The notes under the pieces were generated by a model, which was given only the letters and a program-made list of their open reading frames with translations, had not been told where the DNA came from and ran no database searches. Of a stretch of DNA of 64,000 nucleotides, positions 9,198 through 55,787 are shown piece after piece. Origin of the DNA: Polymyxa betae A26-41. Its lineage: Eukaryota > Protista > Endomyxa: Phytomyxea. The DNA lies in contig RBZT01000633.1 in assembly GCA_003693705.1 (NCBI GenBank), positions 207,280-271,279 on the forward strand, in the 5' to 3' direction. Both the position numbers and the translations under genes were made by a program. The number at the start of each line of letters is the position of its first letter. Positions within the stretch are counted from its first letter, which is position 1.

Positions 9198-10266
9198 ATG
9201 ATTATCGGTGAGAGTATCAACCAAGTTTGTCTCAATCGATGCTTGAACCCAGCTGAGAAGCTAGCAGTACGAGCATCGTTAAATCAGCTAGCTAATGAGG
9301 ATCCATTCGGATCTTTATCCTTCTGGGTAATAGTTCGCTGCTAGTTATACGTTTGCAATGTAGAATTCAAGATCGTTGTTGTTAGGGTAAAATCTATGGA
9401 GTTCAGAACGACTACTTAATCGCGAAATCATTAAATTTCAAAGTTGAGATCTCCAAGAAGTTCTACTTCAGTATGGATCAGGGCAAGACATTTGCTGTTC
9501 TTCCAAATATCGACGCTTGGATCGCCGATAAAGCTAGTAAACATCATGGACAGTTTACTGGAGACCCGAGCGCCCAGCTTCAAGAATTCGTACCTGGCCA
9601 GGGCGAAGGTGACAAGGAGGGCGAAGTCTACTAACCTGTCGCCTCCCCGATGTCTTGGCTAATTTTAAGCATAGGAGCAGGAGTCTGCTGATGGAAAGGA
9701 AGTTGACGGTTCTGCGTCGATTCGGCAACTAAGAGAGTTGGAACGGTTGTCATGGACTGTGTTGAATATCGATCATCATACAGATTTGACTATCAAAGGA
9801 TCTTATATTAGAAACTCTGCCAGTGATCTGATCCCAAACCCAAATTTCCAGGGATTAGAGTCCCCTGCTCAACTATTAGATCTGAATAACTATCAACATC
9901 TACGTCAGCCGCAAGATCTTGACAATCTCATCGTTAGTAATAATTCAAGATTACAACCCAACCTAATTTGCATTGCTCAGGAAATGACGAAACGATTAGA
10001 ATCATTCAGCATCAAAGCAGCTTTGGATACAATATCCATTGACCTACCAAAAGGTGTTTGGACAGTTTCTGCAGTGGATTCTAGTGGCACCTCTGTACAT
10101 CTTCAGAACCATCTATGGCCAGGTAAGACACCCTTAATCGATGTACATTGAAGTCAACATATGTGTAGGGTTTTCTGCTTGGGTTTCGATTGGATCACCC
10201 AGGATTGAACAAGCTGGCTACTTCGGATATGGTCAACGAAATCAGGATTTGGTCTTCGCGTTATAA
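9198..10266 (+). CDS. RSPH9: Radial spoke head protein 9, multi-exon
   Basis: FWGKIYGVQNDYLIA, FTGDP, ELERLSWTVLNID, NPNFQGL, HLWPG, C-terminal GYFGYGQRNQDLVFAL. Confidence 0.88.
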
Positions 10267-53729: not shown

Positions 53730-55787
53730 TCATTCACATCTGCTATTGCACTGCTTCGTTTTGCCACCAGATTCGTTGTCGTCTACAAAATTGTTGACTT
53801 CCTGGCAATATTTTGTTATAAATTGTTACTTTAGGTAGAGATTGTCTGGCTTCAGTTGCTCCAGCGTCTTCTACTTGCTCGATAGCCGCGTCATTGACAT
53901 TCTCAATAATTGTCATGGAATTCTAATCACGTTTAGAGTAGAAAAATTTATATTTGTGTTAATGTGTACCAGATTAGAATCGAGATTGTTCGCCCTCATT
54001 ATGGTATGTACAACTTTCTCATTTGTGACCTTGGCTCCGGCCATCTTAGCATCTATAACATGGATCTCAGAACCCAGATGAAACCATCCCAGTTTAGGTA
54101 CCTTTATGTTTGCTAATAGTAGAAGTCGGCAATATACCTGCCCAGGCCTGTTTATAGACCATTGTTAGCACTGCCTAAAAACAAACCGATACCAGAAACC
54201 TGTTTTGGAGTTTTGCCTTTAGTTGCATTCTTTGTATCGAAATCTGTTGTTGTCGCTGGTAATGCAGAGATTTTAAACCAGGCGAAAACGTTAAGAATTG
54301 AGTCCAGAATCGTTTTAAGAACTGGCCACCCTATAACAATAGATGATGAGGCATTCACTTTGAGATTAGTATTACCTCGAGATTCGGATACAACAGGTTG
54401 AATTGAGCCTTGAGAACTCTTTCTTTTGGATGACGACACCGAGATTCTCTTGAACATAGAAGACGGCGACTCTTTTGTGTTGGTAGCTTTGTTCGCTGAA
54501 TATCATACCAATAAGTAAAAAGCAAGCCAGCAGAAAACATAGTGAACCTCGTGATAGGAATTGTGCTGCATTTGTAACTGCTTTAACCTTTGATCTTAGA
54601 ATATGCTTGGCATTAAGCCATGGCTCCATTTTTGTGACGAAATCGTCGATCACATCTGGAACATTACAAACAGATGATGTGAATAACACGGCTCTTGATG
54701 TCGTGTAACTTGCTTGAGGTGCTAATTCACCCTCACCGATATCGCCTACACATCTTTATCATCGTTTCAAATTCCACTACATGTTGTGATCACCTTGAAA
54801 TTGCTTAGCAATATATGCCAGTCGCTGAACTCGTGAAGGTAATTTGGTATAGGTGTTAGCCATGGTTTCTAATCGTGTTAAAGATGATGCCAGATGAGGA
54901 TGAATCTTGATCTCTCCTGTGGCTATTTTCTTTCGTGTGAATATGACTCGTGAACGAAATGGAATATAGTGAGGATGTGCTACCTAATTTGTCTATCGAG
55001 TCACATGACATACATTCATGAATTCAGAACATACAATTCGAGGTTTTACTGTATAATGAAACGATTCAAATCGCGTTTTCGGCGGTTGTAATCGAGGTAT
55101 TAATGACGACATAAGATACTGCTCAGCTGATACAGAAGATGCAATCGACATCTGTGGAGAGTGACCAAACCCGAACAGGCCATAATGAAAGATAAGCCTA
55201 ATTGATAGACGACCAACGAATATCTCACGATGGTCGAACATCTGAAATATTCGTGGTCCTGGGCTTGACTAAGTTTTAATTAGCTAGAATGTATAATGAT
55301 CATGATACTTATTACACGAATGATGCTATGCAAATGTAGAGATATATAGCCGATTTGATCAGAAACAATGCTATTCGTGATTGATTGGCGATGTAATGTC
55401 AGCCTGAATCACATATTGATAGATGAACTTTGTAATATCGATTTACGAACGATATTCGATTAGTAGGGTTGGATGATGTGATTGCCACAATCACAGGCAT
55501 ATGCTTAACTTCGTTCCATTCAGCAGTTCCTTCAATACTAGGTCGAACTTGCATAGTCCTCTTGGCTACATTTCGTACACGAACCTCTACTGATAGAGCA
55601 TCAAATGGTGATATGCCTAATAGACATCTTAATAGCTATGACGTCTACTATATTGCGTTGTTCTACTCATCATATCCAGCTTGGTGATTCGGCTGATTTC
55701 GATGGATAAAATCCCCTGGATTTGAGGATAATGTTCATCTCGACGTTGAACTGATCTAGCTACGGGACTGCCTTGGTTATTCATCAT
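53730..55787 (-). CDS. C2-domain protein resembling C2CD6/ALS2CR11 (CatSper-tau), multi-exon; 3' end approximate
   Basis: Spliced N-terminus QGILSIEI..VEVRVRNVAKRT..WNEVKHMPVIV..NRISLTL..IGYISLHLHSIIR..IFVGRLSIRLIFHYGLFGFGHSPQ..LIPRLQPP..RLETMANTY. Confidence 0.72.

Follow-up and report, generated by a model that had tools for sequence, protein, structure and literature searches.

A predicted CatSper-tau (C2CD6) family member and a near-complete predicted CatSper gene set in the plasmodiophorid Polymyxa betae

CatSper-tau (C2CD6, ALS2CR11 or CATSPERT) has been characterized in mouse sperm. There it binds CatSper1-4 and EFCAB9 and is required for flagellar targeting, and delivery of the channel to the flagellar membrane depends on its C2 domain (10.1101/2021.07.06.451342; PMC8857959). 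Tau has been described as conserved in vertebrates (10.1101/2021.07.06.451342). In the source data of a 2025 eukaryote-wide CatSper map, the rows examined contain tau for therian mammals only (elephant seal and Tasmanian devil) and not for platypus, lizards, fishes, invertebrates or protists, and the row for Plasmodiophora brassicae holds no CatSper genes at all (PMC12638846). Allomyces, some chytrids, Thecamonas and Tritrichomonas foetus are already known to carry CatSper genes. Fungal tau has only been tabulated, without discussion, in the 2026 supplement of an independent study that placed fungal CTSRT proteins in the human CATSPERT orthogroup (10 proteins in flagellated fungi, 7 of them with PF15729; PMC13358043). 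In the literature searched, with most subscription journals beyond its scope, neither tau in a non-opisthokont nor CatSper in a plasmodiophorid was found to have been reported.

Polymyxa betae infects roots and is a vector of beet virus. A gene in the 64,000-nucleotide stretch of P. betae A26-41 contig RBZT01000633.1 analysed here (the window) resembles vertebrate C2CD6 in having one N-terminal CTSRT-type C2 domain, as judged through homologues, and in the co-presence of CatSper pore and auxiliary genes. It differs in its host, a rhizarian with zoospores where vertebrate C2CD6 belongs to sperm, in a short predicted product (271-446 aa), and in exons too divergent to be matched singly by the Pfam CTSRT model. 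The mouse long isoform contains a roughly 5-kb exon, whereas no long minus-strand frame lies downstream in Polymyxa. Proteins of Allomyces, Catenaria and Rhizoclosmatium and other chytrid proteins in the fungal CATSPERT orthogroup (PMC13358043) align over the five exons described below (E1-E5), but Polymyxa lies outside the opisthokonts. The same domain order and invariant residues are found in C2 proteins of Lapot gusevi, Rhodelphis marinus, Diphylleia rotans, Paratrimastix, Carpediemonas, TZLM1-RC and GEM-RC1; these are annotated as hypothetical or C2 domain-containing, and no paper was found that calls them CatSper subunits. The new element is thus a divergent predicted member of the C2CD6/CatSper-tau family that would extend tau across several eukaryotic supergroups, tau in flagellated fungi being already known (PMC13358043).

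Gene model and protein architecture

The initial annotation had proposed that short minus-strand exons at 54780-55787 splice into a C2-like domain. The motifs it quoted were located on the minus strand from 55787 to 54777, where five exons are linked by GT-AG introns. When 2,082 six-frame fragments of the window were scored with a profile built from homologues, E4, E2, E5, E3 and E1 took the first five places, and E1-E5 are colinear along that profile (positions 3-255). The features are as follows.

Exon 1 (E1), 55667-55787, minus strand: start codon, acidic N-terminal motif and first C2 strand; 8 bits at profile positions 3-24, with 0 of 500 shuffles matching the real score.
Exon 2 (E2), 55451-55616, minus strand: middle C2 strands with the family motifs KRT, W..VKH.PV and PxN; 33 bits at profile positions 35-79, genome-wide E 3e-6, hhalign probability 95.5.
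Exon 3 (E3), 55316-55403, minus strand: C2 strands with the motif G.I.LHLH (family G.V.FHLHD); 10 bits at profile positions 84-111, with 0 of 500 shuffles matching the real score.
Exon 4 (E4), 55035-55268, minus strand: final C2 strands and the post-C2 family signature (YGLFGFGHSPQ, SLIPR.QPP); 73 bits at profile positions 119-186, genome-wide E 7e-20, 22 protein matches with best E 3e-8.
Exon 5 (E5), 54777-54983, minus strand: HP.YIPF motif and a helical hairpin ending in RLAYI (family RL.FL); 27 bits at profile positions 188-255, genome-wide E 1e-5; modelled as two helices in the homologue.
Possible exon 6 (tentative 3' extension), 54548-54745, minus strand: in frame, with a GT-AG intron of typical size.
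Possible exon 7 (tentative), 54152-54495, minus strand: Ser/Lys-rich low-complexity tail, in frame to a stop.

All comparisons of the Polymyxa gene were made exon by exon. The homologues were picked with E4 alone, so E1, E2, E3 and E5 constitute independent confirmation, and with a second, larger profile 0 of 500 shuffles of any of E1-E5 reached the real score. A genome-wide profile search recovered a single locus. Introns 1-4 are all GT-AG, 47-51 nt long and compatible in phase, and their GC content is 23-34% compared with 38-43% in the exons. The frames of E1-E5 are open, the splice sites are clean, and no membrane helix is encoded. The five-exon gene is genuine. Its boundaries allow some variation, with a second in-frame splice option for intron 1 (a donor at 55648) and likewise for intron 3. 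E5 ends either at a stop at 54779-54777 or at a donor at 54793. The originally proposed extent stands for E1-E5, and the 3' end possibly lies further on. Candidate GT-AG introns of 48 nt (54793-54746) and 52 nt (54547-54496) could carry the frame to a stop at 54152, which would lengthen the predicted product from 271 aa with the E5 stop to 446 aa. The larger homologue profile gave exons 6-7 zero support; tails of similar length that cannot be aligned occur in homologues and bear on possible exon 7.

The fold was predicted on a natural homologue, that of Rhodelphis. Its AlphaFold model comprises an N-terminal helix, a confident C2 domain (pLDDT 78-96 per block) and a later helix pair, and its matches in the PDB are solved C2 domains (E about 1e-8), which by proxy supports an N-terminal C2 fold for the Polymyxa protein. 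Read by eye, the C2 loops are variable, and the canonical Ca2+-binding aspartates are missing as a set throughout the family; Polymyxa tau is therefore unlikely to sense Ca2+ and more likely to be a Ca2+-independent adaptor. The same missing aspartates, together with a family-specific post-C2 segment, led us to reject a generic Ca2+-binding C2 protein. Other C2 families (PF00168, NT-C2, C2-C2_1/RPGRIP1 and C2CD3) have the C2 fold in common, and several fall just below CTSRT in the Atlas, but the Polymyxa post-C2 segment matched this family alone. The sequence is divergent, with the family HPFN and LHD motifs altered.

Family membership and descent

An E4 query against 1.84 billion proteins returned 22 matches with E values from 3e-8 to 4e-4. 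Named sources include Rhodelphis marinus, Diphylleia rotans, Paratrimastix pyriformis, Carpediemonas membranifera, Eukaryota sp. TZLM1-RC and GEM-RC1, Lapot gusevi, Allomyces and Paraphysoderma, and the profile search added many proteins of Blastocladiomycota and Chytridiomycota. The homologues thus fall into Rhizaria, Rhodelphis, Diphylleia, metamonads and zoosporic fungi. A word search with E4, and its PDB and Atlas comparisons, gave nothing useful. Among 20 homologues scanned with Pfam, CTSRT (PF15729, C2CD6/CatSper-tau) matched 13, of which 11 scored above the curated cut-off of 24.4 bits; the scores are modest (18-43 bits), and most matches span profile positions 7-143 of 143. CTSRT was the best Pfam family in 11 of the 13, with generic C2 outscoring it in two, and other C2 families, which the initial annotation had named as the counter-case, were not the prevailing best hits. 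In the core alignment, 14 of 17 members match CTSRT. A Pfam scan of E1-E5 taken singly gave no match, and PF15729 searched against the whole genome gave no candidate; four exons, each encoding 29-78 aa, share the domain between them. In the profile comparisons the Polymyxa exons show colinear, significant homology to proteins above the CTSRT cut-off, and the homology to C2CD6 proposed at the outset holds through these intermediates. PF15729 is already annotated on some of the homologues in public databases. Several tau-like fungal proteins (P0012, P0033, P0062 and P0063) carry the NCBI name 'Hyaluronan and proteoglycan link protein 1', which has no backing from their Pfam matches and is apparently a misannotation.

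Neither the E4 search nor the profile search returned vertebrate or named invertebrate sequences, and two word searches run with a profile and directed at animal C2CD6 gave protists and fungi only. Searched by features in the Atlas, a fungal homologue placed a chordate CTSRT cluster first (0.92, with 160 of 256 features in common), and other C2 families followed at 0.90-0.91. Searched by shape, the Rhodelphis model had the chordate CTSRT cluster in its first row, with a weak TM of 0.36. The link to tau is supported by the Pfam matches of the homologues, the CTSRT cluster in the Atlas and the fungal CATSPERT orthogroup (PMC13358043) taken together. On this sequence evidence, membership of the Polymyxa gene in the C2CD6/CTSRT family is well supported through intermediate sequences, and orthology to vertebrate tau is likely.

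When exon scores were summed, the rhizarian Lapot gusevi ranked highest (394, next 364), also when E4 was left out (274, next 246). A tree of 29 sequences, all natural homologues, grouped the fungi together (100/99) in two subgroups corresponding to Blastocladiomycota and Chytridiomycota; its deep branches are unsettled, several are long, and the root is not proven. Because Lapot scores highest and the fungi group by phylum, vertical descent fits, and Polymyxa tau would have been inherited from an early eukaryote. Transfer from fungi was rejected, the best match being rhizarian. With homologues spread over Rhizaria, Archaeplastida, CRuMs, Metamonada and fungi, tau is a candidate ancient subunit, and on this distribution it looks like an old part of CatSper, not a vertebrate addition. 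The initial annotation had pointed to phylogenetic co-occurrence as a check. With CatSper status taken from a published table, tau-like matches came from 3 of 8 CatSper-positive and 0 of 4 CatSper-negative species (12 in all, zoosporic fungi plus Rozella) in non-exhaustive searches, a split with a chance probability of about 0.25, so that the co-occurrence of tau and channel in these organisms is suggestive only.

The CatSper gene set of Polymyxa

The initial annotation had supposed a CatSper-type complex in this organism, and a genome search did find CatSper1-4, beta, gamma, delta/epsilon and theta genes. The pore genes are four distinct single-domain Ion_trans genes.

CatSper1, locus L018: best PDB match CatSper1; filter TLDDW.
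CatSper2, locus L004: best PDB match CatSper2, E 1.5e-23; filter TLDNW.
CatSper3, L006:1017-1229 on contig C892, minus strand: best PDB match of the pore exon CatSper3; filter TCNNW.
CatSper4, locus L001: CatSper4 is the best single-domain match, 128 bits, with four-domain channels higher in sum; filter SQDGW.
Beta: CATSPERB_C, E 7e-12, above the Pfam cut-off.
Gamma: CATSPERG_C, E 2e-6, above the Pfam cut-off.
Delta/epsilon: CATSPERD-E_C, E 1e-14, above the Pfam cut-off.
Theta: TMEM249, E 2e-19, above the Pfam cut-off.

In the CatSper3-like gene, the S1-S4 exon taken alone is closer to Cav/Nav. Its filter, TCNNW compared with TVDGW in mouse, has asparagine in place of the aspartate in this single assembly, a change that could alter the ion selectivity of the Polymyxa channel. 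No ARMH2 candidate emerged from the genome search, which is weak on intron-rich genes. The CatSper genes lie on eight contigs besides the tau contig, with at least nine in the genome, and the predicted CatSper set is near-complete. Set against the P. brassicae row with none, these at least nine genes make a recent loss of CatSper within plasmodiophorids possible.

An RSPH9 radial-spoke head gene, noted in the initial annotation as the sign of a motile axoneme, lies in the window at 9400-10150 on the plus strand (PDB match, E 7e-7). SLC9C did not turn up in full. The exchanger found (L047/L052, contig C944, about 31100-34100, minus strand) is a Na+/H+ exchanger of the SLC9C/SOS1 clade (165 vs 160 bits), and no voltage-sensor or cyclic-nucleotide domain was seen by eye in the downstream frames; a full SLC9C was rejected for this apparent lack. 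A lone voltage-sensor-like protein on contig C413 (L027:1315-1770, plus strand) looks by eye like an Hv1 proton channel and is a possible partner for alkalinizing the flagellum. Contig C839 carries a tandem pair of similar genes resembling cyclic-nucleotide-gated K+ channels (L005/L012, about 196000-202000, minus strand), and more such genes occur elsewhere in the genome (L003, L010, L017, L022 and L024).

Proposed role and alternatives

The best explanation is that this locus is a single-copy, vertically inherited Polymyxa orthologue of C2CD6/CatSper-tau that acts as in mouse sperm, a reading we consider likely. The product would be a soluble protein of 271-446 aa in which an N-terminal helix precedes a single C2 domain, followed by a conserved Gly/aromatic segment and then a helical hairpin. 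Its C2 domain would bind the inner face of membranes or vesicles and its conserved post-C2 segments would contact CatSper pore subunits, so that tau would deliver the channel to the zoospore flagellar membrane and retain it there. By analogy with mouse, CatSper binding and flagellar trafficking are probable functions of Polymyxa tau. Ca2+ entry at the flagellum could in turn tune beating and steering towards roots, a role that we favour by a small measure. Zoospores of the related Spongospora lose both chemotaxis and attachment to roots when Ca2+ channels are blocked (PMC8921600), which fits a CatSper role, although the channel is not named there.

A true C2CD6 orthologue could also have had a more general ancestral job in ciliary or vesicle trafficking, with the tie to CatSper formed only in animals or vertebrates. 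Published co-evolution screens that recover theta and ARMH2 leave C2cd6 outside the CatSper cluster, mouse tau is reported to be able to reach the flagellum independently of the channel (PMC8857959), and many ciliary C2 proteins traffic other cargo. However, these screens are blind to the tau pattern, because the OrthoDB groups they used hold no tau entry for platypus, lizards, sea urchin or any protist row examined. Fungal tau, moreover, is flagellate-specific, lies outside the minimal flagellum, and numbers 10 proteins compared with 9-15 for beta, gamma, delta/epsilon, theta and EFCAB9 (PMC13358043), and none of the named tau-like matches comes from a CatSper-negative ciliated model in the published table. 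We regard a general trafficking origin as unlikely.

Two further explanations concern the identity and the source of the gene. The modest CTSRT scores (18-43 bits) and the two homologues in which generic C2 scores higher would suit a sister C2 family that resembles CTSRT and is not orthologous to vertebrate C2CD6, but CTSRT ranks first among Pfam families for 11 of 13, the gene is single-copy in Polymyxa, and it was an independent study that put the fungal CTSRT proteins in the human CATSPERT orthogroup (PMC13358043), which leaves a sister family improbable. Sporosori purified from infected roots were the material from which the assembly was binned (PMC6328671), no CatSper gene is listed for the relative P. 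brassicae, and the Polymyxa sequence is divergent, all of which would agree with a contaminating flagellate as the source of the gene and the CatSper set, or with a decaying relic. Yet the tau contig exceeds 270 kb and has typical GC and housekeeping genes, the CatSper genes are spread over eight other contigs, and the best match is rhizarian, not fungal; a relic is at odds with the open frames and clean splice sites of E1-E5. Contamination or decay is thus highly improbable, and a tau orthologue acting with CatSper is the reading that we retain.

A wider interpretation, which we put forward tentatively and at somewhat less than an even chance, is that tau has been a core CatSper subunit since LECA, kept or lost with the channel across supergroups, and that orthogroup screens miss it through the fast divergence of vertebrate tau; the near-complete Polymyxa complex, with a CatSper3 filter lacking the aspartate, would then steer zoospores to roots and offer a target against virus transmission. 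The short protist versions reveal the conserved parts, namely the C2 domain, the Gly/aromatic segment and the helical hairpin. A CTSRT structure was not found in the PDB, and these short versions could help to locate tau within the complex or assist attempts at reconstituting CatSper in cells. A virus-vectoring plasmodiophorid with a near-complete predicted CatSper set, compared with P. brassicae, which is listed without one, provides a specific candidate Ca2+ channel for zoospore chemotaxis. If tau is indeed a core subunit and the channel does steer zoospores, the CatSper complex would be a target for blocking virus transmission.
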